Shown one piece after another: positions 44,605 through 63,265 of a stretch of DNA of 64,000 nucleotides. Location: the NCBI GenBank assembly GCA_009103225.1, contig RHPI01003256.1, forward strand, positions 8,914-72,913, given 5' to 3'. Each line of letters begins with the position of its first letter. The first letter of the stretch is position 1. The notes under the pieces were generated by a model. That model saw only the letters and a program-made list of their open reading frames with translations. It was not told the DNA's origin and made no database searches. Both the position numbers and the translations under genes were made by a program. Source of the stretch: Chlorokybus atmophyticus. Taxonomy: Eukaryota; Plantae; Mesostigma and Chlorokybus algae.

Positions 44605-45298
44605 CATGCGGCCGCCGACCAATAATAACGATTGTTATACTCAGGTCTCCGTATCGAGATTACAGGTGGACTGAGCCACGACAATTAAAATGAGTATCCT
44701 TAGGGGAGGCACGACCGTTGCCAATATTTAATCGGCCGGCAGGGGAAACATTTTGCGATGTTGTTATTTAAAAAAGTTATGGTCATACATTGATGCTTTG
44801 ATTGCATTTGCCAATATGCATAAGTACATGATGTATGCGTAGTACAAACAGCGACTACTTATGCCTTGTAACACTATTGCACGGCTCGCATGCACATCTT
44901 ACTCGTATGCGCGTCGCGCATAGCCATACGCCTGTTGCACAGGCTAGGATCAGCTCACGTCGGAACAGTGTATTACTTGCATAGATGTTGGACACAACAA
45001 TCATCATCAAGCGTTCTGCATGCTTGTCGCTCAATTTGAGAAGCGCCGCCGCCGCCGCTGTTGCTGATTAGCAGCGCAATGTCGCCTGGTCGTAGGTGTG
45101 AATGCTATCACAGGTACATATATGCTTGTATGCGTTCATCGCAACATGCATTCGCTCTCTCGTTTTGAAAGCGCCAGCATTGACAGTTTTAAACGGTGAC
45201 GCGTGGCACACGCCCGGCGAGGCGGCGGTGGTGGAGGGAAGGGCGACGACGACCAGGGGAAGCACGACGCCACACATATAACCTCAAGGAACGCAGCC

Positions 45299-48200
45299 AT
45301 GCGGGGATCGCCGCGCATTCCCAAGCGGCCCGCCTCATCCATGCGGGAAGGCCTGCTGCCTGAAGGGAGCGGCGGAGGTGGTGGAGGAGGAGGAGGAGGA
45401 GGAGGAGGAGGAGGAGGAGGGGAAGATATGGACGAGGCTGCCGCTGCACCCTCGGGCTACTCCTCCTCGCCCAGGGCGTCGTCATTGAGAGCGTCGCCCA
45501 AGGGCCCTCGCCCCTTCGCCTCTCCCCTGCGAGGTGGAGGGGGCGGTGGCGGGCTCAACGGCGGTCTCAGCGGCCCTCTCCTTACCACCGCCGCCGCCGC
45601 CCAGGACGTCCATTACGCCGACCCCTACGCACAGGAGCCTGCTGGCGTGGCGAACGGCCATGCCAGGCTGAAGGAGGAGCACGACGACATGGAGGAGCTG
45701 GAGGTCGTTGGTAGGGAGGACAAGGCCGGAGGGTCAGGGGCGGCGGCGGCGGAGTCCGGGGCGTCAGGGGCGGCGGCAGGGTTGGTCGGAGGGTCAGGCA
45801 TGGAGTTCATAGAGAAGATCCACTTACCAGCTGGTGCAGAGAGGACTGTAAGGCGTGCCAACAGGTGTCTTGATTGCGGGCCGAGGCTGTGGGCACGCAT
45901 GCCTGGGTTAGGTGGAGCCAAGGGGACTTATGCCAATGTTACGTTGTTGGCGCTGTGTTGGGCGCTGTCGTACTCGACGATCACGTCCACGCTCACGACA
46001 ACGGCCGTCGCTGCGCGTGCACTCATCGCGGATCAGGGATGGGTCACGCTAGCGGTTGGAGCGGTGTTCATTGGATCTGCAGTCATCGTCGTGCCCGTCG
46101 CGCTCTCCATGCACCTCGTGCGTGCGTTGCCTCTGTTTCGTACGCAAACACCCAACCCAATGTCACAATCATTGTGTCCAAAATGAGCTGCATGCCAACA
46201 CACACACATTGTTCACACGCGCGCTCTGCAGGCAAACGCATGCACACGCGCGCCCGCACACAGCCACATACATGGAGTGTGAAAGCATGCACATACATCC
46301 GCACGCATGCGTGTTCACGAAGGCACCTGCGCATACATTCACACGGACACAATATCACGTTCGTTGTGCTCAACTGCACGCACGCGCAGACATGGAGTCG
46401 CTTGCTTCAAACAGTACACGCGCATGCACGCACGCGCACAACCTCATACACACTACGTGTGCAGTTTGGACGGCGCATCGGTTTCATGATCGGTTGCGCA
46501 ATGGGTATGCTCGGCGCCGGCTTGTCCACCGCAGCTATGTACAGAGGGAACTTCGCGCTGCTCGTGGTGGGCAGCCTCCTGCTGGGCGGCGCGCTCGGAC
46601 ACGCGCAGTTCTACCGATTCGCCGCAGCCGACGTGTCCACGCTGCACTTCAGATCGAAAGCAATCTCACTCGTGCTTGCGGGCGGCATCATCGCTGCAGT
46701 GGTAAGCATCTGTCGCACGCACACTAACCCACGCATGCACACACGCACGTCGCCACCCACATCGCTCACACAAGCATGTGCGTGCGCATGCGCATGCACA
46801 CATACGCGCGTGCACATACGCATGCACTCTGCCACCCACCCACTCACACGTAAACGCGTGCGCGCACACACACTTGCATGTGCCCATGCACACGCCTAAA
46901 CACAGGACAGCTGTGCTCACGTGCATACACACAAACATCCACGCACGCGCGCAGGTTGGTCCCCAGCTCTCCAAATCCACTCGCAACTGGATCCCCGAGC
47001 ACGAGTTCGCGGGCACCTACATCAGCATGATCCTCCTGTTCGCGGCCAACCTCCTCCCCCTCTTCTTCATCGACTTCTCCACTCCCGAGGAGGTGGAGCC
47101 CGCCGAGCTCGAGGAGTGGTTCAAGAAGGCGGCTACCATCACCACCGACGGTGTGGTCGTGAAGCTGAGACTGAAACATTACAGGAGCGATGAACAGACG
47201 GGACCGGCAAGGAGTCTTATTGCTATTTTACTACAGCCGGAGTGTCTGGTGTCTATATTGCTGGCGTCGCTAGCGTATGGAGCTATGTTGTTCATTATGA
47301 CGCCGCTACCACTCGCCATGATAGAGAGGTCATGTTGGACTTGGACTTCATCGCATGTAGTCATCAGCGGTCTATGTGTGTGTGTGCGTGTGCGTGCGTG
47401 CGTGTGGTGCAGATAGAGAGGTTTATGTCCTCAACGCTAGCAATGTGAATGCTGCATTGCAATGTGTGGGTGTGCATGCGCGTGTGTGTCATCGGCGTCA
47501 GCAACTGAGGACTGATTTGTGGTGCGTTTTCTTTATCTGCAGGTCGTTCAGCTTCAACCAGGCTGCGCTGGTTATTCAGCTGCACATGCTGGCCATGTTC
47601 ATTCCCGCGCTGTTCACGGGGCACCTGATGTCCACCTTTGGCACATTCGCGGTCACACTCACAGGTAAGGACCACGTTTGCGAGTGCATTTTGCTGTGTG
47701 TGCGTTCGTGTGCTGGAGGCTCAACTGAATGACTGCAGGCAACGTGCTGTTTGTTGTGGCGATCATCTTCATGATCACCGGCCAGCACTACTTCAACTAC
47801 ATGGTGGGCATGTTGTTCCTGGGCGTGGCATGGAACTTCATGTTCATTGGGGCCACCAACCGCTTCACAACCACATACCGCTTCTCCGAAACCAGCAAAG
47901 CTCAGGTACTATGACTATCAATCACATGCAGATTGTGTGATGCATGTGGTCAGTGCTGTGGGCGCACCAGCTCAACATGTTGGTTGCAGGCGTTGAACGA
48001 CACGCTTGTGTCTGGTGCGGCTGCTGTCGCCAGCGTGTTCTCCGGCTCCGCCAGAGACGACTTGGGTATGTTTATGAGTTGTATAGAGCTGATGTGTTAA
48101 ACACGTACTTGCACTCATGCATGGTGTCACATGAAACTGGTGATCAGTCATTGATGACAACAAGTGATCATGTTCTTCCTCCGTTTCAGGTTGGAAGGGT

Positions 48201-48338
48201 GTGCAGTGGCTGGCGCTCATTTTTCTAGTGTTAGGTATCGTGTTGTCGGTAGGATTGCAGCTGGTGCATTCGATAAACAAGAGGAAAAAGGGGTTGACTG
48301 ACCGCAGGTGGTCAGGGGAGCGTAACCTACCTGCATAG
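45299..48338 (+). CDS. MFS transporter, bacterial RfnT-like family, 647 aa; exons 45299-46117, 46465-46701, 46955-47328, 47543-47664, 47739-47905, 47990-48065, 48190-48338
   Basis: FGRRIGFMIG, QFYRFAAADV...RSKAISLVLAGGIIAAVVGPQL, QLHMLAMFIPALFTG, GVAWNFMFIGAT...KAQALND. About 12 hydrophobic segments. All junctions in frame. Start codon uncertain (upstream GTG at 45203). Confidence 0.9.
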
Positions 48339-49838
48339 CTTAGCATTGCACGGCGGTTGTATGTATATATACATGTGCTGTGTATGTGTGTTGCGAGCAG
48401 ACTGATACATGTGTGTTTGTGGCGGCAACTGTGCGTTGCCGCCGCACCCACACTTGTCTTGGATCCCGTAGGCAGTGCACACATTCTATTGTTGTTTGCT
48501 TTTCGGCTTGGTTGACCGGAGTGGCTTGCGCATCACATGCGCTGAGAGATGATGCTCTTGCGATCTTTCTGTGGGACATTGCAGTGCTCATGCCGTGAGG
48601 GCTGAATGGTCCAGTGATGTGCAATGGAAGTGGTTTGTTAGGTACTAGGTCCATCCCGTAGTATTGTCTGCGTAGATGGCTGCGTTGATGTAAGTGCCAT
48701 CCAACTGCTTAATGGCAACCTATACTCAGCATCCCTTGTCATGCGTGTTACACTCTCGAGCAAGCCGTAATGCTTGCAATCTATTCTTTATACACCGTGC
48801 ATGCCATTATTGTAGCATACTATCTCTTTTGCACGTGCCTCTAACACACTAGGCGTGTGCATATTTGCAATGCACACACAAGGGGGACATCACGCAAGTA
48901 ATAATATATATAAATTACCATGTTTAGCTTTCTTCTACATCATATAATGGTAATCTTGTTGTACACTATTGTTATATGGTTGTTCAACTTACATTGTTAT
49001 TGACTACGCAACATATCCATGAATGGATTCAATGATTAGCAACAGAGCTATTGGAAATAGCGGTTAACACATGTGCTTTATACAACTTCGTCAACCTTGT
49101 CCGCGTTGCATTGTAATATTAATATTGATTGTGTTTGTGCTTTTTTGAGATGTACAAGTGTATCCGTTATGCGTTCATTGTATATTGGGCAGATAAGTAC
49201 GCATGCTATCATTTCGTGTAGAAAATTGAAGTCGCTACTGTGCCATCATTTGCAATCCGCTAGCATGCACTTGTAATAAGTAATTCAAATCATCATGGTC
49301 ATCTTTTGTAAAGCATTAATGCGAAACAATGTTCATGCGCAGTACATAGAGATTAATAACTTGTATAAATTCCATAAACGGCATTTATCACCCAATGTTG
49401 GCGTGTATAATGCAGATTTGCCACGTGTGCACTTCTTTTCTGCTCTTTGAAGCAATACAAGTATGCAAGCATTTGCGTAATTTAAATACAAATGTAAATA
49501 ATACTTTTACGTGCGTACCTTACAATACATTGCAAGACATGCTTTAACCACAAGTAATACCCGTTTATAGGTTATGACAAGGGGCCTGGTGCGTATGTAC
49601 GTATATTGCACTATACCTATTACCAACCACGCCAGGTAATTCAGTGTAGGCTGTAACACCTTTGTGATGTACAAGTTAGGCCCTGCCGCAGGGCCAACAT
49701 GTAGCTTACCTTAGGTAGTGAGAAAAGCAGCAATGTTTTATGACAATAACGCGAACGTGCTGCCTTTGCTTGTATCCAAACACGACATTCGGATAAGAGC
49801 GCCAGTCCTTCTGCACGCCCGGGTCATCCTCCATCACC

Positions 49839-51373
49839 ATGGCGGCGGCGGCGGCGACGGCCACGGCATTGTCGTCGTCGGCAAGCTTAGCTAGCTTGTT
49901 GCCGACGCCGAGCAGAAGGCAACCGCTGCAACCGCAAACACAGCAGCAGCAGAAGCAGGTGCTGCAGCGTGGGGTGAACGTGGTGCTGTCCGCCTCCTCC
50001 TCCTCCCCCTCCTCCTCCTCCTCCTCCACCTCTTCCTCCTCCTCCGCCGCCGAGCCAGCCTGGAAGCAAAAGCTCGCAGCTGCGGACGCCGTCGCCGAGG
50101 ACATCCGTCGTCAGGCCAGGGAGGTTGAGGAGGCCTACAAGCGTCGTCGTCGTCAGCAGGGCGGCGGCGGCGCCTCCTCCGCCCCGTCCCTCTCCTCCCT
50201 CCCTCTCCTGGACTACGTCGGCGACGACGGCCTGGTGATTGACCACAGCCAGGAGGGCGCCAAGGCGAGCGTCTACGCCGTGTACGACCAGGCTCAGTCC
50301 CTACGCTACGTGGGCGTCACCAGGGGCATCCACAGCGCCATGAGGCTTCACCTCGCCCGCCGCCCAGCAGAGTGCTGGCATGTACGTGTGCACCACCTCG
50401 CCAGACCGTCACGCGATGCCCTGGAGGCTGTGCGTGACGCCTGGGTCAAGGGGGAGGAGGGGAATACAACAACACCGCCGCCAGGAAATGACAATGGACC
50501 CACGCAGCTAGCGTGGGAGAACCCTATTGACGTTAAGCCCATCATGACGCCACAGGAAGTAAGCACACAAGCAGGAGAAGGAGTGCATGCATGATGTGCG
50601 TGTGCACGTGTGTGCATGCGCGCGCGTGTATGGGTGTGTGTTGTGTGCCTTTGTGTCCTGCAATCAAAGCATGCATGTCCGTGCACAGTCTCATCCGTTC
50701 CCGTGCTATCCTTTTGGTCGTTGTATTATTGCAGCGGCCAATAAGCTTTCTTACAAAGTATATGTCTGTTGTCTTGCGTGTGTGCAGAGGGAGTCGGTTG
50801 AGAGCGTGGCTGGGCCGGCACAGGCTAAAGCGCTGAAGCAAGTGGCGCGACGCGTTGAAGCAGAGCTTGAAAAAGTGTTCAAGGTACAGGGCCATGCATT
50901 GAAAATCATATGAACACATATTCGCACGCACACACGACGCAGTGCAAGTTTGTAACATGCTTTCTCACAAAAAGAGCATGCATCACGTGCACGCATGCAC
51001 ATACATGCAATGACATGCGCGCATTTGCGAACACGCAAGTGCGCGTGTGCGTGCACACATGCACAAGCACATTGGTTGATTGATTGAGTAGGCACACACT
51101 ATAATAGTGCTCGCTTGTTGATGCGCCTTTGCACTCGTGTGCTCAGGAAAGGGGTATTCAAGAGAACATGCGATTCGACCCAAAGCTAAAAGAAAAGGTG
51201 AGAGACTTTGGCTTGCTGTCTTGAATTTCAGCGATTTGAGAAGTGTCCGACGATTTGCACTTCATTACGGGAATGTCTGTCTACAGGGTTTGCTTGATCT
51301 GAAGAATCTAAGGCCAGTGCCGGATGCATCGGTGCCTGCGGAGAAGCCAAAGTCACAAGCCGCTGCTAAATAG
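49839..51373 (+). CDS. Plastid-targeted GIY-YIG-like protein (GRXS16 N-terminal / cyanobacterial type), 317 aa; exons 49839-50558, 50788-50883, 51147-51197, 51287-51373
   Basis: Ala/Ser-rich transit-like N-terminus, SVYAVYD..LRYVGVTR, HL.RRP..C, RPSRDALE.VRDAW, PPGN, PIDVK, LKQVARRVEAE, RFDPKLKEKGLLDLK. Confidence 0.9.
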
Positions 51374-52546
51374 GCTGCTAAATAGGCTGTGTAGGGGGCT
51401 GAAATTGGGGAGACATCGTGTTGTCGCTGAGGGACAAGCTGGTGGTGTTCTGTGCGCAAATGTAGGTGATATATAGAAGCGTATTTCTCAGGTGTAGAGA
51501 GATGTAGTTCGGTGCTAGTTCTGTCAAAAAATGGTACCATTCCTTGTGTTGTTGCAGTTTTGCACGCTGTCCACTCTCAGAGGATTCATGTGTGCCAACT
51601 TTGCCACGTCGCTGTTTGCGACTGTTGCCCGATTACACGGTGGGGAGTTCTGATGCTCAATAATACAAGATGTCATGGTCATCAACGGGGGGTCGCAGTT
51701 ACTGCCTCTGTGACATTGTTCGCGGTTGCAAATCATATCACAGACAAGGTAGAGGACTTGGTGTTGCTGTGGGGGGCGGCAAAGCTAAGCTTGGATAGCA
51801 ACAATACCACTGAACGTGTGTGGTGACTCACTACTGATGAGAGTGTGGTTGTATACAGTGTCTACGAAGGTAAACATTGAAGACAGTAATGAGAGTGTTG
51901 CACTGCACCAACCTCGTGGTTTGCTTGCCATGCTTGTCATTGTTGCAGCACAACTGTAGCATCGCACCAGTTGCATGGCGTACAAACAGCTGCAGGATTG
52001 TCTGCAAGCCCTCTCAGTTGCAAATGGGTGATGTCCCAACAACTGTCTCACCGTGCATTCCCACACATTAGCTAAGCGCTGATCTGGGCCCCCTCCCAGA
52101 TCTGAAATGCTATTGCGTGTGCTTCCTGTACCATTTGCACTTGCATCTCTCCGCTTGACATTCTAACTTGATGCCCAGCCTTGTGGTACGACAAGCAGCC
52201 AATCCACACACAACATGGACAGCTGCTGCTGTGCATGCTGGTCAATGCAGACCTCTTATTGGCGTACACACAGGGTCCAAACGAACATCAAGTGTATTCC
52301 AATTGTTTCATATCAAACTTAGCAGCGGAGCGCATACAGGCCGCTGTTTGAAAACTGCTGCAGGGTTGCCAAAACAGCTGGCGCGGCCGCTGCTCCAGTG
52401 CACACCACCCAACACCGTCCGCACGGTCTCAACAAGGCAGATGGAAGCGCTTGGGCAAAGGTAATGCCAACACAGATGTTGGTTGGTTGGACTGTGGGAG
52501 GTTATGAGAAGGAACTCTGCAGCAGTCAGCATGAGCTCGCTGAAGC

Positions 52547-55500
52547 CTATTCAACAATCTGCATGCGTACGCGCAGCCTCCTTGTGGTAGAGTTAAACTT
52601 GATAGAGCAGGACTCAGGGTCCACCTGTGAAACAATTATGCCATGAGATGCCTTTGATCAATGCATGTGAACCATCGGGAGGACACGCCACATAGTCACA
52701 TTACCTGATGGGGGAGCTGCACAGAAAGGGCGTATTTTCCCTCTGCGGTCATCTTGAACACGTCGCCGCTGAGCACCTCCGCAAAGATGTCTTTGGCTGT
52801 GGTGAGTAGTGGCAGCCATACAACGAGCTCGAGCCATGGCTGGCCTGAGGTGTGGCGCAGCTCATACGCGGGCTCGGCTGCCTCCGATCCCGCGCCGAGG
52901 CCCTCGATGACGGCGGCGGCCTCCTCGGTGATGCGCAGACGCGCCGTCAGCCGATGCGCGCCCTTGTCGAAGCTGATCGAGCAGCTGTCTGGGTCCACCG
53001 ACTGCGGGAGGCGCAGGTCCAGGGCGTAACGCCCGCCCACGTGGAGCTTGAACACGTCCCCATTGGCCACCTGAGTGACAACGACCGCATCAAACACAAC
53101 ATATCAGCGAAGCACGGCAGCAGCTTGTCGAGAAAACCAACCAAAGGGCGCGTGTGGCACATCACACATAGCCCTACACATGCACACCAACCAAGCGAAT
53201 GCACATGGCCTGAAATAAAAGATGGTAACGGGCGTCAACCCAATGACCCAGAAAAACGCACACACTGCTTACCTCGGCATCAATGTCACGTGCGGAGTTG
53301 AGCAGCGGGAGCCAGACAACCAGTTCCAGCCACGGCTGCCCGCCGCTGTGGCGCAACTCGTACGAGGGCTCCACCTCTCCTTCGGGTGGTGCAATGGCAA
53401 GACCTGATTGAATTACGCGGTCAATACAACAATAAAAAGACAAGAATCCTGACGGCCTGAGTGGCGAATACGTGTATAAACTACCTGCTGCTGCGGCTTC
53501 CTCATCGGTAAGGTTGCGGAGTCTGGCAGTTAGTCGGCGAAGGGTGGAGTCGAACCGGATCGAACAGCTGTCGGGATCGACGGGCTGCGGCAGCGCCAGC
53601 TTCAACAGGTACCGGCCGGGGACAGTGAGCTGGAATGTGTCACCACCCAGCACCTGCACAGACCACTGCATCAACATTGTGGCAGACCATGCAGCAGAGC
53701 AAGGATGGCAAGGATATGTACAATGCGAAGACAAGGCAATTGATTCAATGCGCTACGACACACACTCACCTCAGCATCGATGTCCCTAGCAGACGCCAGC
53801 AGCGGCATGTACACAACCAGCTCCATCCAGCCAGGCTCCGCAGCTTGCTTGAGTTCATACGCAGGTTCAACCTCTCCCCCTGTTGACAATCCAGCATAAT
53901 CAGCATCCAGGGCACACGCACTGTTTCCTGCAACATTTCTATAAGGAGAGGCCTCAAGCCACTGGTGGTTGGGCGTTCACACCTTCAACTGCGTTTGCTG
54001 CAAGGGGCCGGGCTCCCGCACCGGCTGCCGCCGTGCCAGCCACTGCGGCCGCAGCCGCTCCAGCGGGAGACAGGCCCGTGGCGGGGATGCGCTGATCCAC
54101 GCCATTCTGCTGAGGTATAGGACCCTTGCCTGGCAACTGGCCCTTCTCCATCTGGGACTGCTCCTTGTCGGTGACACTCTGACGATAAGCACGAGACAAT
54201 ACTCTTAATAACTGTGAATGTGAGCATGCACACAATGGAAGTAACACCATAGAAATGCGGTAGTCACCTGTTGCTTTGTGGCAACCCCGGCGGCTGTCCC
54301 CGCCCTGCGTGCCTTCTCAGCTGCAGCTGCCTGCTCGGCCTTTGAATCTGCACACGCAAACACACCTTGTTTCACTTGTTTACACCATCAGGGTGCATAC
54401 TGCTCCACCAACAACTATGCAAGGATGTGCACTGCAGTCGCAGTGTGACAAGCTTGCTAGGCGAAGAGTTGCCATGTAACAGCCATGACTTACTCTTTGC
54501 ACGGGAGCGGCGCTTGCAGCAGATACACAAACATAACAACAGCAAAATGGCCGCCGCGCCAACACCAGCAGCGACGCCAATGACAAGACCTTTGTGGCTG
54601 TCAATCCAACTCTTATTACCCGACGCAGCAGGAGCTGGAGCAGCTGCAATTGCAAGTAGTGTTAATAAGCATGCCCGCACACATGCATTGCAGTGAATGC
54701 TAAGTTATGACACAAAAGACGCGTGCACATGTCGGCAGACGCATACAGACACGCGCGCACACACACATAACTCACGTGTGGGATCTGCGAGTGCAGGCAC
54801 TGGGAAGGAAGTTTGTAGGGCAGTTACTTGACCATAGACGGGGTCCAGCTGGATCTGGTCTGCGGAGGCAAGCTTGCTTTGCAGAGCTGATAGGCGGCTC
54901 TGGTAAAACTGCGAGCCAGTGAGCGGCTTGACGGCAAAAAACACAATAATGCTGCCTGAGCGAGCAGCCAAAATGTCCACTTGCTTCGCATCCACGCTGA
55001 GATAGTTGGCCAGGCTTTGTCTAAAAGATTGCGCATTGTAATCATTAAAGCTGCCGCTCGTCGTCAAAGTGGCAATGATCGGTGGTGCGATGCAGTTGCA
55101 GTTGTCCAGCTGATTGACTTGATTCTGCTCACAGGCTGTGCAACCTGCACAACACCACAATAATCACAAACACTCTTGCCACCGACGACGTAGTCACTAT
55201 GTATCAACGGCAAAAGCCAACATGAGCAACTCCACACGTGGAAATGGAACTTCATTGCAAGAAGCGACGACATACCGCTGGGTGGTGGTGTAGCGCCACC
55301 AGTATTAGCCGGCGGAGGTGGGCTGGTGGGCGGTGAGGTGGTCGGGCCGGGAGCCGTATTGTCTACGAGGACACGTGTCGCGCGTGCAGCCTGCAGTAGT
55401 CAATAGCGATGTTGGTGCTAGATTTTGGTAAACAACTTATTGGACGCATGTTTTCAATATGGCACAAAACCTAACAGCAGTCGGTTGCAACAACAATATA

Positions 55501-56198
55501 CTGCACAATGCAGTGCAACGCAAGGCAATGCCAGTTGTGCGTGAGTGGACCGATGCGAGAAACCGCACGGCTCATGAGTGGCACAGAAAGTAGCTGTACC
55601 TCAACTGTGCCGTGCATTCAAGAGCAGATGACGATGCTATGAAGCCAGCACTGACGCACAAGGAAAAAACAAGGACCTTGCGATGTAACAACCAAGAGCA
55701 GCATTGGACTGGGAAATGGCATGAATGAAGATAGGTGAAAGTGCCACTTACAGGGTTGTATGCGTTGAGTGCGCAGTCATTCTCGGCGAGGAGGATATTG
55801 GAGGGTGTGGCTTCAACGAGTGATGCGCAGTCGTCAACCTCCAGGAAGGCGGCGGTGGTGTATGCGATCCACTGCTTGCCAGCAAGAGCTTCCTCTACGC
55901 AGGCGGAGTCCTCCACGTCCACCACCCTCACCGTGGCGCGGTACCTATCCTGCCCCGCCTCACCCCTGATCGGCACAGGCAAGCTGAACACCAGCACACC
56001 TGTCGCCTCGTCGTAGCTAGCCACCTCCCCGTAGAACACCACGTCATGCCGGCTGCACCGCCCGCCGCCCGCACTTCCACCACCCGCCGCCTCTAGCCCA
56101 GGAACCTGCAGCAGCAGCAACGCCACGCCTACAGCCAGCAACGCCAGCAGCGCCGAGGACCCCATGGCTACAGGCCCTCTGCCCCGCATCTTCAGCAT
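52547..56198 (-). CDS. Type I membrane receptor-like protein, 736 aa: SP, TIMP/NTR-like, Pro/Thr stalk, SEA-like, TM, 3 x PIH1-type CS; exons 56198-55752, 55390-55276, 55144-54776, 54643-54494, 54347-54268, 54178-53983, 53879-53770, 53653-53485, 53403-53273, 53070-52705, 52624-52547
   Basis: Ten GT-AG introns with mutually consistent phases give one 2211-nt ORF ending in TAG. Hydrophobic signal LLALLAVGVALLLL. TM GLVIGVAAGVGAAAILLLLCLCICC followed by KRR. Three repeats of P.YEL...WLELVVWLPLL.SA.DI.AEV...D.F.L...G.Y.L.L.LP..VDP.SCSI.F.....RL..RL. Alternative ATGs at 56189 and 56165. Confidence 0.85.
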
Positions 56199-57299
56199 CG
56201 TCCTCGTCCTCCCCCTCGTCCTCCCCGCCGCCGGCGCCGTCTGGGCCAGGCAGGCAGGTTTCTTGCTGGCCAGGCCTGCGGCTGGCACTACCACGTAATG
56301 GCACCCATGGCTAGCTGCTACTACACTCCTCCAGCAGCTACCTCGGCCCCCACTCTCCCTCCTTCCCACCCACCCCCAACCACCCCGGCGACAACACCAG
56401 CCACGACGAGGCAGCGGCAACGGCGGCGGCGGCGGCGAGCGCGCACAGGCGCCAGGTGTCACGTTTCAAACCAGCTTTAGCGCCGGTCTCTCGTCATCGT
56501 CATCAACAACGAAATTTACGCGCCAACAGCAGGGCCCGAAATGGTTTTCAGAAAAAGGAACCTTATCAATGAGGCGAACAAAAAATGACGCCATCTGAGC
56601 CATCTGCGGCGGGGCCTGCAGGCCAGGGAAGATCGGGTGACCGATTCTGGCAGGCCAGGTCGACTAACCACCGTCATCACTTACTTACCTTCCGTCAAAG
56701 GGTGGTTGCTGGGCAAACACAACCATATCATAACGTGTGTATATGAGCGCGGCGCGTTAGGTGGCCGGAGACGGGCCGATGGACGGAGCCCCTGTGGACG
56801 GAGCGACACGTCCAACGCCCGCAGTTTCGACGGATCAAAGGGCGGACGCTCCTTTTATCTTTGTGAGAACTGACAATTGCGTACTTAGGTAATGGTTGGT
56901 GCCCTGATGCACAAGAGTTTCCCAGCTTAGCATGTGAGCAAAGGCAGCTTGAAGTCATGCTTAAATCACGCTTGATCAGGTGACGGTGCAAACAAAGCAC
57001 TTATGTAGCTGGCGAACTTGTAACGCTGCTTGTGCATTATGGTACGAACACAGATTATACACGGTATTTTTAACATGCATTCATGAGCGTATATACCTAT
57101 TATGAGTTATGGTTATCCACATTTCACAATATACTTGAAGCAATTTTAATGTTATTGATTCATGTATGCCGCATGCTTGCACACAGTCGCATAATGTCTC
57201 GTACAGCTTGTTGCTGGAATCCGATGCTACTTGCAAACTACTGGTACTTAGCAACTGGTTTTTCAAACTTGTAGGGGAAAATGGGTATGAGGGTGTGTC

Positions 57300-60200
57300 C
57301 TAATCAGGGTTGGCTGCATAGAGTTCTCGTGCCATACGTGTGCGTTGTGTGGCCTGTCGTGACAACCATGCGCGCCACCATGGCACTCCGAAGCATCCGA
57401 CGGGTGGCATGGGCTCCATCACCAAAAAGGCCATAGTCAGCGTATGTGCGCTCATGTATGGTTCCACCCCTAGCTCCACTCCAAATAGTGCCATGAATGG
57501 TACCATGGGTTCAAGGAGGAAGGCTGTGTCCGAGCCGGTGTAATCTTGCAATTGGTGCATCAGTAACGCACATTCTTCACGCTCAGCGTCTTTTTCTCCT
57601 TATGGCAGCCTTGCATCAGGCAAGTCCACCATCACATCAGTGAAGAACAGCTCGATCCATAACGGTCGTCTCATCGGTGCTAGTATTTGCCCGCGTATCT
57701 GCATCTGGTCTGACGCAAAGTGAATGGGGCCTACAACATCCGATAGCATGGGATGACACGTAGTGTAAAGGGGGGGCTGCGCTCCAGCAACTGGTGTGCA
57801 TGTGTCTCCGTCATGTTTGCCATCTGCAGGGCTGCATCTCGTACCAACACTGCCCCCCCTATGAAGCATGTGTAACTGGAAGTGCTCCTTCAGCTTGTCC
57901 ATGTTCTTGGTGGGTGATAAGCGGTGCCATGGGTATCCTTGTCATCTCTTTCAACACCCTCTGCTGTCGTGCCGCGGTCACCACTCCATTACCCCACAGA
58001 CAGTACTTCATCAAGTGGTCATAGTTGCACGTGAACCGCACACGTCATACAGCTATGGCACGTGGTGCTTCCACCTTTGCTGCCTGCAGGTAGCGTGCCC
58101 TTTCCTCGTCAAGCGGCGCGTAGACTCTAACCCCCCTGATGCCAATTCAATAATGCTTGAGCTGCGGGTATGTTGCACCAGGCTTCTTCCATCTGCACCT
58201 CTGGTGGTCCCCCTCCATATGTGTTAAAGAGTAGTACCAGCGTAGTCAGCCACATGTTCTTCCACATCCTGCCATCGCCGCAGTTGTGGTGGCTGCCAAT
58301 ATACTGCTTGAGTAAGCAACCGCAGCAGATCCAACCGTGAATGTGCCCCCCATCGTGCTATTGTCTGCCTGTCCAGCGAATGCAGCCGCTCTTCCGTTTA
58401 TGCTTCTTGTAGCAAATAAGATGACCCACCGCAAGGTGTCCAGCACTGCCTCTAGATCAGGATCAGTAGCCCGTCTTATGTCTCTCCCCAAGAATGCCGT
58501 GACCCTTGCTAATTCTCATAGTATGAGAATGTGCAGCTAACGCGTGACGTACAAGTATTGTGGGAATCAATCGATCCACCCCGCATACATCGGTGCAAAA
58601 AGTTGTAGTGGATTGACCTCGTGTGGTGCAATCTCAAAGCCCACCTGAGGTGGTTCGCACGAAGCTGCGGCTAGCTGAGGAGGCTGTTCCCCTAATTCTT
58701 CAGTCTCTTCCTTTAAGCTTTCCTCAGCTTCCATGGCTGCTACCCACCGTGGTGCTCCCTCTTCTGATTCTCCCTCAGCCTCTGCTTCGAAGAGCAGCGT
58801 ACCCCAAATACTGAGGTTTAAGAAATTGCAGTTGCTGCTGCAGTTAAGCCACCATGGCACGTGACTCCTTCAGCTCCAGAGTCAGGTTGTTTTGCACAAG
58901 GTGTTGAGCGACGGCGGCAAGTTTGGTTCCCCCCTCGTCCTCGCCCCATGGCCGGTGTTCGATGTCCACAAGGCCCACCTGAGGGTGGCTGACCCCCCCT
59001 TCCCTTAGTTGTGGTCTCAGCGCAGGCCTCTTGGCATAGCACACGGCTTCAATGTGTCCTTGCTTGTCATAAAAGGTCACCTGTGGTGTACGCTACACCG
59101 TAAGGTGTCTCGTGTGCGATTGCATTCTCTAGCAAAGTGGCCTTGGCCTCCATACTTGTGATAGGCTGCTGCAGTTATGGCCACATGCGCAACATGCGTT
59201 GGTTGGCGGTGTTGCTGAGGCCGCTGTGAGCGGCCTCCCTCGTGACGCTCCCCATGCAAGGCTGGCACTGTATCCTTATCCTTGGAACCTCCCCGATTCA
59301 ACTCAAGGATGGTTCTCCTATATTCCAGCTTCTGCTGGACTGCTTCATCTGCCTCAAGTGCTGCTCTCAACGAGTAATGCCCCCCCCCGACCGCGCTCTN
59401 NNNNNNNNNNNNNNNNNNNNNNNNNNNNNNNNNNNNNNNNNNNNNNNNNNNNNNNNNNNNNNNNNNNNNNNNNNNNNNNNNNNNNNNNNNNNNNNNNNNN
59501 NNNNNNNNNCCCCCCCCCGATTGCCTGTCTGCAACATGGTTTTCACCTCTTGTTTAAGAGCGCGGTCGGGGTGGGACATGTAGATGATAGATGCTGCCTC
59601 CTCTTGCAGAATGCGATAGTCTGTGTCTTGCAACAAGTGCATCATGCGACTATACATCACTCGTGGGCTTTCTTGAGGCCTTCGCCTAAAGTTGGTCTGC
59701 TTCCTAATCTTGTTAGGGTTGATGGTGGAAAATCCTTCCGCAACCTCTCCCACAGCTCCACTATTAAGCCTGTAGGGTGTATGGCTGTTGGTGTCAGAGG
59801 TAGTGGTGGTGCTACACAGTTGTTCCCTCCTGCTGGCGGATTCACAACAGCTCCCCCTCCCATGGTTGTGATGCTGTCTGTGCCAGTGGCGGTTGTTGTT
59901 GTTGCTGAGCCTTTGCTGTGAATGCTACCAATGCTGCTGCAGCTCGTGCAATCTCCTTCCTTTTACTGCAATCATAATTCACCCGCTAATTGTCAAAGGC
60001 TTCATGCTTGAGGTACTTGGCAATGAATTGAAATGCCTATTTATCCCCCATTCATGGGATGCGTGCCTCCCAGCGTAAAGTCTCCGCAGCAAACTTCACT
60101 TTGAACTCCTCTAAAGACAAGGTGCCATGCCTTCCGCTGAATCTCAGCCCATGGAATAGGGGAATGTCCTCGACTTGTGCTCCTCTGGTTGCCATCCCTT

Positions 60201-60380
60201 CAGGGTCCTGGAACTAGTGTTGAATCCGTCGGCTTTCTGTTTGTTGCTCTTGCAGCTCTGGTGCTATGGTGGTTAAAGAGTCCCTCTTTTTGATAGTGGA
60301 GGATGAACTTCTCTCCCCGTAGCAAGTACTTAACCTCTGAGGTCACTGAGTCAGTGGTGGCATTCACCCTGCGGTGTTAA
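57300..60380 (-). mobile_element. Second, more decayed gag-protease retroelement related to 7504-14852
   Basis: LSLEEFKVKFAAETLRWEAR vs LELQDFKDKFECRMISWSAR. ESPRVMYSRMMHLLQDT vs PRMMYTRMVKLLEDT. Eroded knuckles GQGHFAREC and KQGHIEAVCYAKRPALR. IELASGGLE vs LKTAGGGVE. Boundaries approximate. Confidence 0.75.
59400..59509. other. Assembly gap (110 N); single Ns also at 23859 and 36948
   Basis: Direct reading. Confidence 0.99.
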
Positions 60381-62800
60381 CTACCACACATGCGTTTTCT
60401 CTGTAGGAGTGAGACAGCAAGTCAACAGGCTGCATGCAATTTGAATAGATGTATCAATTAGATTGCCAGCATGTGAACTTGCACAAGAGAGACAACGGCA
60501 TGCGCACACTGAATGATGAGAAATAACAACTAATGCAGCTAAGGGATCAATTGCACAGCGCAAGCAGTTAAGCACAAGTATAAGTAACAATGGTGCGCAT
60601 GTGCGTGAATACACTCGAGCAAAGCCAACATGCATACCCAAGCACAGAAGGATTAAACTTACGGTATGGCATAACAACGGTCACTCCGGTTTCACTTGAA
60701 CACTTGCTTTTACACCAAAGAACTATACATTTGCACATAATATAGATATACTCGAGCTAGCTACTGACAGTCACATAAGCAATCGTTAGGCTAAAAATCT
60801 GTAACGCCACGGCCGTACTTCTTTGATGCCTCCCGCTCTTCCATGCGCCTATTCAGCTGCGTGCCGAGTTTCCCGCTATAATGTCTGCGGGCTTGTGCTC
60901 TGGACAGTCCGCCATGTTGGCGGCGCTTGGCCTCCCTCCGCCTGCCACGTTGTGCCATTGATGCAGTCCCTCGGGATCGACTACTGCGGTCGATATATGC
61001 TTGTAACAAATGAGTGTGCACAGCCTATAAGAATCAGTCGAGGTTGTTAGGTATTGAGGGTCCCTCGCATGACACGGTGCAGAGGAAGGGAGGGGTTGAG
61101 CGGGTACGGGAGGCCATGGTCAAGCGGCAACACCAAGATGAGCACAAGACGGTGAACATCAAAGTGCAAAGTTGCGTTCAGTCAATGCCCCAAACGCTGT
61201 AAATGGCGCAGAAGGAGGGCAACCGAAACAGATATATAAACCTTGAAGCCATCAGCTATGTTGTAAGACTAGCTTCTTATATGTACAACAAAAAGCAGCT
61301 ATGTTGTTGGGTTCCTTCCATCAATATCAATATCAACATCAACAAGCCATATTGCAGTAAGCTGTTTCAACTTACTCCTGCCTTAGAGTTGCTAATCGCG
61401 CGCAAAACTTGCATGTCAAAACATGTCAAGCAGAACAATGTATGCTTAATCTTGCGCAACATGCAACATAAAAACAGCTTGCACGATTAGCGGTGTTCTG
61501 CAAGGAGGCCTTGAGCGAAGGCAAAACAACTGATTGCGGGCATACTTATAATCATTGCCCCTTCTAAGTTGAACGAAAAGTGCACCCAACTTAGCAGACA
61601 CTTGCTAGCTTTGGATTTGTTAATAACACACAATAGCATAGTCAGGAGCATGAAACAACCGCACAAATTCTGAACCTGAAAACCAGACGCATACTGCAAG
61701 CATGCAACCTGGGCATCAAGGCCTTACGCACGAGGCTGCCCCAGCATTTAGCCCCAACAAATGTGTGACAAGGGCACAGGGAAGGACACGGAGGTTTTAC
61801 GCACAGGACTACCTCAGGGTACTGCCTCAACAAACTTGTGACAAACCCACAAGGATGGACACCGAGGCCTTGTACACGGGGCTGCCCTAGCACATTCAGC
61901 ACCACACGCACGCACGCACGCACGCGCGAATGCATTTATCTGCGAGTGTCGTCCGCCGCTGACCCACACCGCCACGACAACCTTGTAGATCAGCAAGATT
62001 CAAAGTCCCGACTCGACGACTAAGTATTGAAATAATGCCATTGCGGCAAATGCAACTTGTGGGACATTAATAGACCATGTACAAAGCCTTGGTTGTATTG
62101 CCACCATTGCAGTCGTCGATGCAATGCTGCTGACTGATCGCACATGGCACACGGGCATACATACGTACATGCAAGGATATATGTACATAGGCCGCGGTCA
62201 CTGCTTGCCAAGGTCACTGCTGAATGAACCTGGTGCGCGGCCAGCACCGCTACGACAGACTAAACCTGCACATAATTGTACATTGCAATGCATGTACGCA
62301 GTGTCACTGAGTAGCTGCATGGGCCAAGGTCCATCCACAATAGGTATGATCTACCCTGCGGGTATCATATCGCCCACAACACATCCCAATGCCAGGCTTC
62401 AGCGAACTAACACCCGATTGATGTCGCTCGGCGTTGGCGGCCAACGGGATCGGGCACAGGGTCGGGCGGCTCCACCAGGCTGGTGACTCTCCCGTGTTGC
62501 ACAGATACATTTTATTGCACGTGACCGCCAGTGGACCCCTGACGAAGGTGCATACAGCGAAAGAGCCACAGTCGTTGCAACCATGCATTGATACAGCCCA
62601 GCCAGTAAAAGGGCATTGCTTATACTCGCCACCAATGCGCACGCGACCTAACTATTACAGAACCTTCCTCCGGGGCAGGCCCACGTAGAAGAGTTCATTG
62701 GTCGTATTGGGACTCACGCATGGCAAAGCTTGGAGCGTCTTTGAACACTTTGCCAACGCTCGTGGATGCTGACATGACGTGCACGTGCACGTGCACGAAC

Positions 62801-63126
62801 GCATGAGAATGTTCACGGGCTTGCAATTGAAGGAACCGAAAACTTGAACATCACGACAAGCAACCACACAACCCACCCACCCACCCACCCATGCAGATAC
62901 AGACACCGGCACATGCACAGACGTGCAAGCAAGCAAGCAAACCAAGCAATCGCACCTGAGCGCACGTGATGACTGCACGTGCATGCATGCTTGCATGAGA
63001 ATGTTCACGGGCTTGCAATTGAGGGAAACTTGCACATTAAAACAAGCAACCACACAAGCCCCACCCACCCACCCACCCACATGCACACACAGACACATGC
63101 ACAGACGTTGAGGCAAGCAACCAAAC
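62801..63126. repeat. Diverged tandem duplication, period about 192 bp
   Basis: GCATGAGAATGTTCACGGGCTTGCAATTGA at 62801 and 62993, each followed by CAAGCAACCACACAA and (CCAC)n. Confidence 0.9.
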
Positions 63127-63265
63127 CTGTCACAGCCCACTCGACCACAAAAGACTTGGTGCTTTTATGGTCGATTTGTGGTAATTTGAAGTACCTTCCC
63201 GTTACATTCCCCCCCACTTAAGAACGCTGACGTCCTCGGCAGCTGCCCGGTCAGCTGGGGAATTA

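Follow-up and report, generated by a model that had tools for sequence, protein, structure and literature searches.

One expressed gene of Chlorokybus atmophyticus (Chrsp117S01704), located on the minus strand at 56198-52547 of the window, i.e. of the whole stretch of 64,000 nucleotides analysed here, codes for a membrane protein of type I topology that crosses the membrane once. Its modules, from a predicted signal peptide through a SEA-like ectodomain and a single transmembrane (TM) helix to three cytoplasmic CS domains of the PIH1 type, are listed in Table 1. Among the larger flanking open reading frames, covering 45203 to 63140 of the window, no Pfam matches were found.

Table 1 Location of the transcribed unit and of the protein modules in the window, with the basis of each assignment (the slash marks the G251/S252 bond)
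Feature	Position	Strand	Basis
Transcribed unit: ~63 nt 5' leader, 11 exons, ~205 nt 3' UTR	52342..56261	-	Contig of run X1, 10 exact intron skips
Start codon and predicted signal peptide, aa 1-37	56088..56198	-	Hydropathy peak 2.44 at residues 17-35
N-terminal ectodomain, aa 38-149, Cys 48, 100, 124, 142	55752..56087	-	Sequence
Exon 2 stalk, aa 150-188, with TSPPTSPPPP	55276..55390	-	54% P/T/S over 39 aa
Exon 3, Cys cap and SEA-like module, aa 189-310	54776..55144	-	AF2 pLDDT 62.7, pTM 0.58
G251-S252 codons (ARSG/SIIVFF)	54951..54956	-	Sequence; beta2-beta3 turn in exon 3 model
TM helix, aa 331-353, ending CLCICC, then KRRSRAK	54516..54584	-	Hydropathy maximum 2.74; helix in whole-protein model
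Low-complexity cytoplasmic linker, aa 354-452, 27 Ala, exons 4-6	53983..54515	-	Composition
CS repeat 1, aa 453-545, exons 7-8	53485..53879	-	PIH1_CS stretch; exon 8 alone E 0.009; seven strands predicted
CS repeat 2, aa 546-640, exon 9 and first part of exon 10	52918..53403	-	Exon 10 PIH1_CS E 3.4e-5, 24.7 bits
CS repeat 3, aa 641-736, rest of exon 10 and exon 11, stop	52547..52917	-	Best PIH1_CS stretch, 652-715 of public protein P0001; model match to PIH1D1 CS 6gxz_D, TM-score 0.78

Gene model and transcript

The original prediction of a 736-aa open reading frame in 11 exons with consistent phases could be rebuilt: splicing at the implied borders yields a coding sequence of 2,211 nt (736 codons plus stop) with an unbroken frame, and all introns are of the GT..AG type. 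The public model of the gene is 717 aa long and lacks 19 aa corresponding to the last SEA strand; it therefore needs a 19-aa correction, which restores this strand. The public protein is listed with the precomputed family PF27822.1.

Transcript evidence was obtained from Logan contigs, which are assemblies, of two runs marked 'RNA?' by the tool, the kind being guessed. In run X1, a single contig of 2,479 nt covers 56261..52342, and its ten joints coincide with the ten introns of the model, including those linking the TM exon (54643-54494) to the CS exons (53879 onward). Since the ten introns are removed at exactly the predicted borders in this contig, the TM exon and the CS exons belong to one mRNA. 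Run X2, which originates from another study, has the full set of ten joints distributed over two contigs, the only break being located inside the Ala/Gly-rich exon 6. The splicing across 54643-53770 that had been proposed for verification thus shows the predicted junctions in both runs.

A gene model artefact, in which two neighbouring genes, one for a small glycoprotein of the membrane and one for a soluble protein with three CS domains, were joined by prediction or contig assembly, could draw on the fact that X2 yields two contigs rather than one and that a Logan contig spanning two genes is no proof of a single transcript. Against it stand the X1 contig, which is continuous over the 11 exons in an unbroken frame, the removal of introns 4-6, which connect the TM exon with the CS exons, in both runs, and the position of the X2 break in a low-complexity Ala/Gly stretch which both contigs enter, one from either side. 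Moreover, inspection of the reading frame revealed neither a stop codon nor an ATG-led restart between the membrane part and the CS part, and the public annotation independently joins the two. We regard such an artefact as highly improbable; in view of the contigs across all ten junctions it was rejected, and this explanation is close to refuted.

Ectodomain and membrane segment

The hydrophobic N-terminus (residues 12-35), the cysteine-containing N-terminal domain and the Pro/Thr stalk can be read directly from the sequence, in line with what had been described, and the ectodomain contains eight cysteine residues in total. Signal peptide cleavage presumably occurs at GLEA/AGGG, and the Pro/Thr/Ser-rich stalk is probably O-glycosylated. 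The expectation that the N-terminal domain is of the NTR type found no sequence support: no match was obtained in Pfam (E<=1) or among PDB sequences, and the sole hint is a weak language-model lead to NTR/TIMP/NtA (score 0.62).

Exon 3 encodes a cysteine cap, C189-x2-C192-x10-C203-x-C205, and a module which in a single-sequence AF2 model of moderate confidence adopts a beta-alpha-beta-beta-alpha-beta fold adjoining the membrane (strands 22-28, 55-61, 64-69, and 105-112; helices 34-48 and 77-92 of the model). The motif G251/S252-I-I-V, which resembles SEA-type autoproteolysis sites, falls between strands 55-61 and 64-69. In three independent searches, the receptor-like kinases (RLKs) ALE2 and LRR-VIII-1 were the best structural matches: residues 97-231 of ALE2 were the top match in Swiss-Prot (E 1.9e-4), which also included LRR-VIII-1 RLKs; ALE2_N kinase clusters matched the model with a TM-score of 0.68 and an rmsd of 2.7 A; and the CARD1 ectodomain (9vbv_A) was the top chain of 48,161 PDB chains (Z 8.0). 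SEA-type structures, namely MUC16 SEA5, TMPRSS6, dystroglycan, and Trop2, were matched with Z 6.4-7.1, and SEA families accounted for 34 of 100 language-model neighbours (score 0.79). The CxxC..CxC spacing of the cap resembles that of C421/C424/C434/C436 in CARD1, where these residues lie ahead of the SEA-like fold (PMC13184263). Fold, structural matches, and cysteine pattern hence agree with the proposed kinship to ALE2 and HPCA1/CARD1. The anticipated SEA assignment holds for the modelled fold and not for the sequence: neither Pfam SEA (PF01390) nor Pfam ALE2_N (PF23180) matched the public protein or the larger exons at E<=1, and comparison of exon 3 with PDB sequences gave noise or marginal matches only.

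Hydropathy and composition bear out the predicted TM segment with its juxtamembrane CLCICCKRR and the Ala-rich linker. The KRRSRAK stretch on the C-terminal side of the helix provides a positive-inside flank, and the juxtamembrane cysteines may be palmitoylated. The 99-aa linker lacks secondary structure in the whole-protein model (pLDDT about 30-40).

CS repeats and their relatives

The tail consists of the linker and three CS domains; no Pkinase match was found. The repeats comprise about 95 aa each and are 51-65% identical to one another, and the intron which follows RDIDAE in repeat 1 recurs at the same codon in repeat 2. With dN/dS values of 0.15-0.28 between repeats and saturated synonymous sites, the three repeats are old and under purifying selection.

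The assignment as three PIH1-type CS domains, already made in the original prediction, is upheld by Pfam, the repeat alignment, and the fold match to the PIH1D1 CS domain. PIH1_CS (PF18201) matches the public protein in three stretches with E 4e-21 and 75.8 bits (cut-off 23.3), i.e. 50 bits higher than generic CS (E 5e-5), and even the half-domain in exon 10 alone passes the Pfam cut-off. The structure model superimposes on the PIH1D1 CS domain from the RPAP3 complex (6gxz_D) with a TM-score of 0.78, an rmsd of 2.7 A, and 22% identity; by sequence, the match to the solved PIH1D1 CS domain is weak (E 0.045), and comparison of the three repeats with PDB sequences gave noise or marginal matches only. 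In a fold search of Swiss-Prot, kintoun and PIH1D2 ranked on top and USP19 was also among the matches; the single-sequence AF2 model of the whole protein is poor (pLDDT 47) and was used for local CS matches only. A PIH1 domain (PIH-N, PF08190) was absent in an hmmscan of the public protein and all larger exons at E<=1.

CS and HSP20-like sandwiches are versatile, some of them binding HSP90 directly or acting alone. The architecture could be as described and the repeats nevertheless function outside the R2TP/HSP90 context, as generic interaction modules with a beta-sandwich fold or as holdases of the HSP20 type. They could interact with other partners, e.g. the cytoskeleton, dynein subunits, or factors of membrane trafficking, or they could form oligomers; instead of a signalling receptor, the protein would in that case be a glycoprotein which serves adhesion or cell-wall anchoring in the sarcinoid cell packets. 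This explanation is a serious contender, if a somewhat doubtful one. It is in accordance with matches of the repeats to the Shq1 CS domain and to an archaeal Hsp20 alpha-crystallin domain (profile E 0.025; TM-score 0.69), with the missing PIH-N domain, with the mucin-, CD34-, and collectrin-like features of the ectodomain, and with a weak Pfam match to Mid2-type wall sensors which is limited to the TM region. The bit-score difference between PIH1_CS and generic CS, the PIH1D1 CS domain as the best single-domain structural match, and the nature of the sole soluble sequence relative argue against it.

This relative, a small soluble PIH1_CS protein (P0006), emerged when 1.84 billion proteins were searched exhaustively with HMMER; apart from it, only the protein itself and three fragments of orthologues were returned. 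P0006 is tied to the repeats by phmmer (E 2e-5; 1.84 billion proteins), and a search starting from it returned PIH1_CS proteins only. The orthologous sequences, all of them fragments, come from other samples and align position by position with repeats 1, 2, and 3. Word-based searches among 5.8 billion proteins, for which the complete sequence and the ectodomain served as queries, retrieved the protein alone, and two metagenome scans gave no relative. Phage tail-fibre matches (P0005, P0007-P0011) were rejected as relatives, as they share a short GDIYK-type repeat only. The searches of 1.84 billion and 5.8 billion proteins thus revealed no other membrane-anchored protein with multiple PIH1-type CS domains, as had been surmised. 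To our knowledge, PIH1-type CS domains have so far been known from soluble HSP90/R2TP-type assembly factors. The arrangement of ectodomain, TM helix, and triple PIH1-type CS tail is a new combination of known parts which was not described before.

Proposed function and comparison with known systems

The reading we favour, plausible though tentative, is that of a kinase-less receptor or scaffold whose CS domains dock a TPR co-chaperone together with HSP90 at the membrane; we infer chaperone recruitment because the CS domains belong to the PIH1-type domain family. Located about 100 residues from the membrane, the three domains would form a multivalent dock for the post-TPR segment of a partner of the RPAP3/Tah1 type, which in turn might bring HSP90, and perhaps RUVBL1/2, to the membrane. 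The SEA-like module with its G/SIIV motif may cleave itself, and the ectodomain could then be shed or respond to force, like that of MUC1-type proteins. A surface sensor or membrane scaffold for chaperone or assembly machinery, with a possible flagellar or cell-wall link, had been suggested originally. Partners of the SPAG1 and DNAAF4 classes are thought to bind CS domains in the same manner as RPAP3. The CS domain of PIH1-family proteins pairs with RPAP3/Tah1/SPAG1, and that of PIH1D1/Pih1 heterodimerises with RPAP3/Tah1 via a short region downstream of the TPRs (PMC5974087).

The same heterodimerisation surface, as seen in PIH1D1-RPAP3, would also suit a membrane-tethered decoy or regulator whose three CS domains sequester the TPR partner from soluble PIH proteins and thereby tune R2TP-like assembly, e.g. 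of axonemal dyneins during zoospore formation. A domain content of CS only, in three copies and lacking PIH-N, would fit this role; a simple cytoplasmic sink, however, needs no extracellular SEA-like, cysteine-rich ectodomain, and we consider the decoy unlikely.

A more far-reaching form of the docking model is a kinase-free surface receptor in which a change in the SEA-like ectodomain controls the docking of an R2TP-like HSP90 co-chaperone complex by the CS domains; in this specific form it must be rated as quite unlikely, slightly more so than the decoy. Candidate changes would be self-cleavage and shedding, a mechanical pull from the wall, or redox reactions at the Cys cap, and an outside cue could in this way be coupled to the local assembly of large machines, e.g. 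axonemal dyneins when zoospores form. Such a receptor, if real, would also show non-kinase wiring of this ectodomain module in an early streptophyte lineage.

Plant receptor kinases are believed to have arisen as different ectodomain modules were shuffled onto a single kinase. Here, in a streptophyte alga from one of the earliest branches, the SEA-like module of the ALE2/HPCA1 type is linked to a cytoplasmic part of quite another kind as well. Should the tail bind an RPAP3-like partner, this would be the first such machinery tethered to the membrane behind an ectodomain, and the protein would offer an uncomplicated means of studying what the SEA-like module responds to; should it not bind, the range of uses known for the PIH1-type CS fold would still be widened.

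With the PIH1 family (PIH1D1/Pih1, kintoun/DNAAF2/PF13, PIH1D2, PIH1D3/DNAAF6, and MOT48), the Chlorokybus protein has the PIH1-type CS domain in common. Members of this family are composed of an N-terminal PIH domain and one CS domain and are soluble in the cytoplasm or nucleus, whereas the Chlorokybus protein contains three CS domains, placed at the membrane by a signal peptide and a TM helix, and no PIH domain. As the client-binding PIH-N domain is absent, it does not strictly belong to the PIH1 family.

ALE2 and the LRR-VIII-1 kinases (HPCA1/CARD1, At1g06840, At3g53590, and At5g37450) likewise possess a Cys-capped SEA-like fold before a single TM helix; their tail is a kinase, whereas the Chlorokybus protein has neither kinase nor LRRs and carries three CS domains instead. 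SEA mucins and related surface proteins (MUC1, MUC16, Msb2, dystroglycan, EpCAM/Trop2, and TMPRSS6) have a similar layout from the signal peptide to the juxtamembrane region, comprising a Pro/Thr stalk, a SEA fold with a G/S-hydrophobic turn, a TM helix, and a Cys-rich basic stretch, which in MUC1 is CQCRRK. In contrast to these proteins, the Chlorokybus stalk measures just 39 aa, the lineage is a different one, the tail is unrelated, and a Pfam SEA match is lacking.

Tandem cytosolic CS domains on a membrane-anchored, HSP90-linked protein are also found in USP19 isoform a, whose CS domains are combined with an ER anchor (PMC4726498). Since this isoform is known in animals, a CS domain at the membrane is not new in itself. 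USP19 is tail-anchored, has no ectodomain, and contains two p23-type CS domains which serve a protease domain, whereas the Chlorokybus protein is of type I, has CS domains of the PIH1 type, and lacks an enzyme domain. What is new here is the receptor-like topology of type I in combination with three CS domains of the PIH1 type.

Gene model and transcript evidence

Splicing of the 11 minus-strand exons, with GT..AG at every intron, yields a coding sequence of 2,211 nt or 736 codons and thereby reproduces the original prediction exactly.

Exons of the spliced gene model (window positions)
Feature	Position	Strand
exon 1	56198-55752	minus
exon 2	55390-55276	minus
exon 3	55144-54776	minus
exon 4	54643-54494	minus
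exon 5	54347-54268	minus
exon 6	54178-53983	minus
exon 7	53879-53770	minus
exon 8	53653-53485	minus
exon 9	53403-53273	minus
exon 10	53070-52705	minus
exon 11	52624-52547	minus

Two public sequencing runs from two separate studies (X1 and X2) contain roughly half of the words sampled from the 3.65-kb stretch, as expected if exons only are represented. When the contigs were mapped onto 51800-56900 (5,101 letters), a single 2,479-nt contig of X1 extended from 56261 to 52342 with ten skipped segments whose borders are those of the ten model introns, and X2 contained the identical ten joints on two contigs meeting within exon 6, which encodes the Ala/Gly-rich linker. The transmembrane exon and the CS exons therefore lie on a single spliced mRNA in one unbroken frame, with the caveat that this evidence consists of assembled contigs and that the run kind is labelled 'RNA?'. 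The spliced contigs contradict a split into two genes between these exons, in line with the original one-gene prediction, and an artefact of the gene model is highly improbable.

The public counterpart (P0001; jgi/Chlat1/1278/Chrsp117S01704, EukProt Chlorokybus atmophyticus P000308), retrieved when exon 10 served as query in an exhaustive HMMER search, is a 717-aa protein identical to the 736-aa model save for 19 residues. Its model uses an upstream GT donor (GTCAAG) in exon 3 and leaves out GQVTALQTSFPVPALADPT (19 aa; window 54776-54833, minus strand). Since the splice donor seen in both RNA runs is GTGAGT (54776/54775) at the end of exon 3, and the dropped residues supply the final strand of the SEA-like domain in the fold model, the 736-aa form is the supported one. 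Public protein sets carry the gene as an unnamed prediction with the Pfam labels PF18201 and PF27822 (PF27822.1, precomputed, a recent family), the latter of which may cover the ectodomain or the juxtamembrane part.

Intron 8 (53404-53484, 81 nt) is in frame and stop-free; its retention, seen in no contig, would separate CS repeats 1 and 2 by a further 27 aa. An X2 contig (56083-56392) covers a longer 5' leader with an upstream ORF of six codons (MGAITW-stop, 56288-56308, minus strand), downstream of which the main X1 contig starts (56261). At 56417-56587, upstream of the 5' end of the gene and near a (GCC)n tract, some coverage by X1 and a further run (X6) and loose ends were observed, which could represent an extended leader or an adjacent transcript.

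Cytoplasmic CS repeats and their relatives

Pfam detects PIH1_CS (PF18201) in three stretches of the public protein (E 4e-21, 75.8 bits) and generic CS at E 5e-5, and finds neither a PIH1 N-domain nor a kinase; exon 10, comprising just two half-domains, already exceeds the curated PIH1_CS cut-off. The three repeats are 51-65% identical to one another, and repeats 1 and 2 are interrupted by an intron at the identical codon (RDIDAE|V). Because synonymous sites between repeats are saturated while dN/dS is 0.15-0.28, the triplication is old and every copy is constrained. For the whole protein, single-sequence AF2 modelling gave a poor model (pLDDT 47), with seven strands predicted in each repeat. 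The local PDB matches of this model are the CS domain of human PIH1D1 complexed with RPAP3 (TM 0.78 by target, rmsd 2.7 A, 22% identity), the Shq1 CS domain and an Hsp20 domain, and in Swiss-Prot the highest-ranking fold matches belong to kintoun from many species, PIH1D2 and USP19. The proposed three PIH1-type CS repeats are thus borne out, and the fold matches, although drawn from a poor model, do not contradict CS beta-sandwiches. That the repeats serve as generic interaction modules or holdases is a possible, if doubtful, alternative.

Among 1.84 billion representative proteins, eleven matched exon 10 with E<=0.001 in the exhaustive search: the protein itself; three fragments, one of them (P0002) contained in a Logan contig of ERR14822422 and the others (P0003, P0004) in two NCBI assemblies; P0006, a soluble PIH1_CS protein of 187 aa with 39% identity; and, for the rest, phage tail-fibre repeats, which were rejected as chance matches. 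The Logan contig (L001:1-1066) is a genomic orthologue fragment from another sample, in which one complete repeat is flanked by the end of another and the beginning of a third. Its intron positions differ in part from those of the Chlorokybus gene: none is located at DIDAEV, and the one at LPQP|V..VDHES is also used in repeat 3 of the latter. P0003 is nearest to repeat 1 (74%), one part of P0002 (P0002a) to repeat 2 (60%), and P0004 and the other part (P0002b) to repeat 3; the three-repeat tail is therefore kept in related organisms, the conservation there being that of the CS-repeat tail as known from fragments. Word searches of proteins and metagenome scans revealed no further relatives.

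Ectodomain and topology

Modelled alone, exon 3 adopts a beta-alpha-beta-beta-alpha-beta order (pLDDT 62.7, pTM 0.58). Foldseek against Swiss-Prot models ranked ALE2 residues 97-231 first (E 1.9e-4), followed by the membrane-proximal parts of the LRR-VIII-1 kinases At1g06840, At3g53590 and At5g37450 and, at lower ranks, by SorCS, KIAA0319, PTPRR and dystroglycan. The ESM Atlas shape search retrieved streptophyte kinases with Pfam ALE2_N, LRR kinases and TAXi-type aspartic peptidases (TM 0.63-0.68, rmsd 2.7-3.0 A, ~100 residues), and VIA-align against 48,161 PDB chains placed the cryo-EM ectodomain of CARD1 (HPCA1) at the top (Z 8.0), ahead of dystroglycan, TMPRSS6, Trop2 and MUC16 SEA5. As the tool itself rates Z values of 6-8 as middling, the weight of the assignment lies on the agreement of three differently working searches. 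In CARD1, a SEA-like fold immediately precedes the transmembrane helix, with Cys421, 424, 434 and 436 ahead of it (PMC13184263), to be compared with C189-x2-C192-x10-C203-x-C205 in the Chlorokybus protein. At the turn that links strand 2 to strand 3, the sequence ARSG|SIIVFF resembles the SEA self-cleavage motif. Because neither Pfam SEA nor ALE2_N matches the sequence, the kinship is one of fold only, and at this level the predicted Cys-capped SEA-like module holds. Of the domain calls expected originally, PIH1_CS was obtained and Pfam SEA was not; for NTR, neither Pfam nor PDB gave a sequence match to the N-terminal domain with its four Cys (aa 38-149), and the NTR/TIMP lead is weak (score 0.62).

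The topology is deduced from a hydrophobic N-terminus, eight Cys in the ectodomain, and a transmembrane helix at 331-353 with the basic flank KRRSRAK. The CLCICC motif is probably lipidated and the SPPPP stalk probably glycosylated.

Possible role and comparison with known systems

The CS domain of PIH1D1/Pih1 forms a heterodimer with RPAP3/Tah1 through a short segment beyond the TPR domain, and RPAP3 is itself a binding partner of HSP90 and RUVBL1/2 (PMC5974087). By analogy, three CS domains on a flexible tether would most likely act at the membrane as a multivalent docking site for a TPR co-chaperone and HSP90; as the PIH-N domain is absent, the protein would not itself pick phospho-clients. 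The architecture is confirmed and its domain-level interpretation supported; a role in HSP90 recruitment is suggested by this analogy, and the dock as a whole is a plausible but tentative reading. A function as a decoy appears unlikely.

In contrast to the PIH1 family, the protein lacks a PIH-N domain and is membrane-bound, and thus is not a member; having no kinase, it is not a receptor kinase either. A literature search found no membrane-anchored PIH1-type CS protein, in agreement with the earlier statement that none with several such domains was known, and no description of this gene. In animals, USP19 isoform a is a membrane-anchored CS protein with an ER anchor and a link to HSP90 (PMC4726498). 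All individual parts of the Chlorokybus protein are known, and its novelty is their combination: an ALE2/HPCA1-type SEA-like ectodomain, one transmembrane helix and three PIH1-type CS domains.
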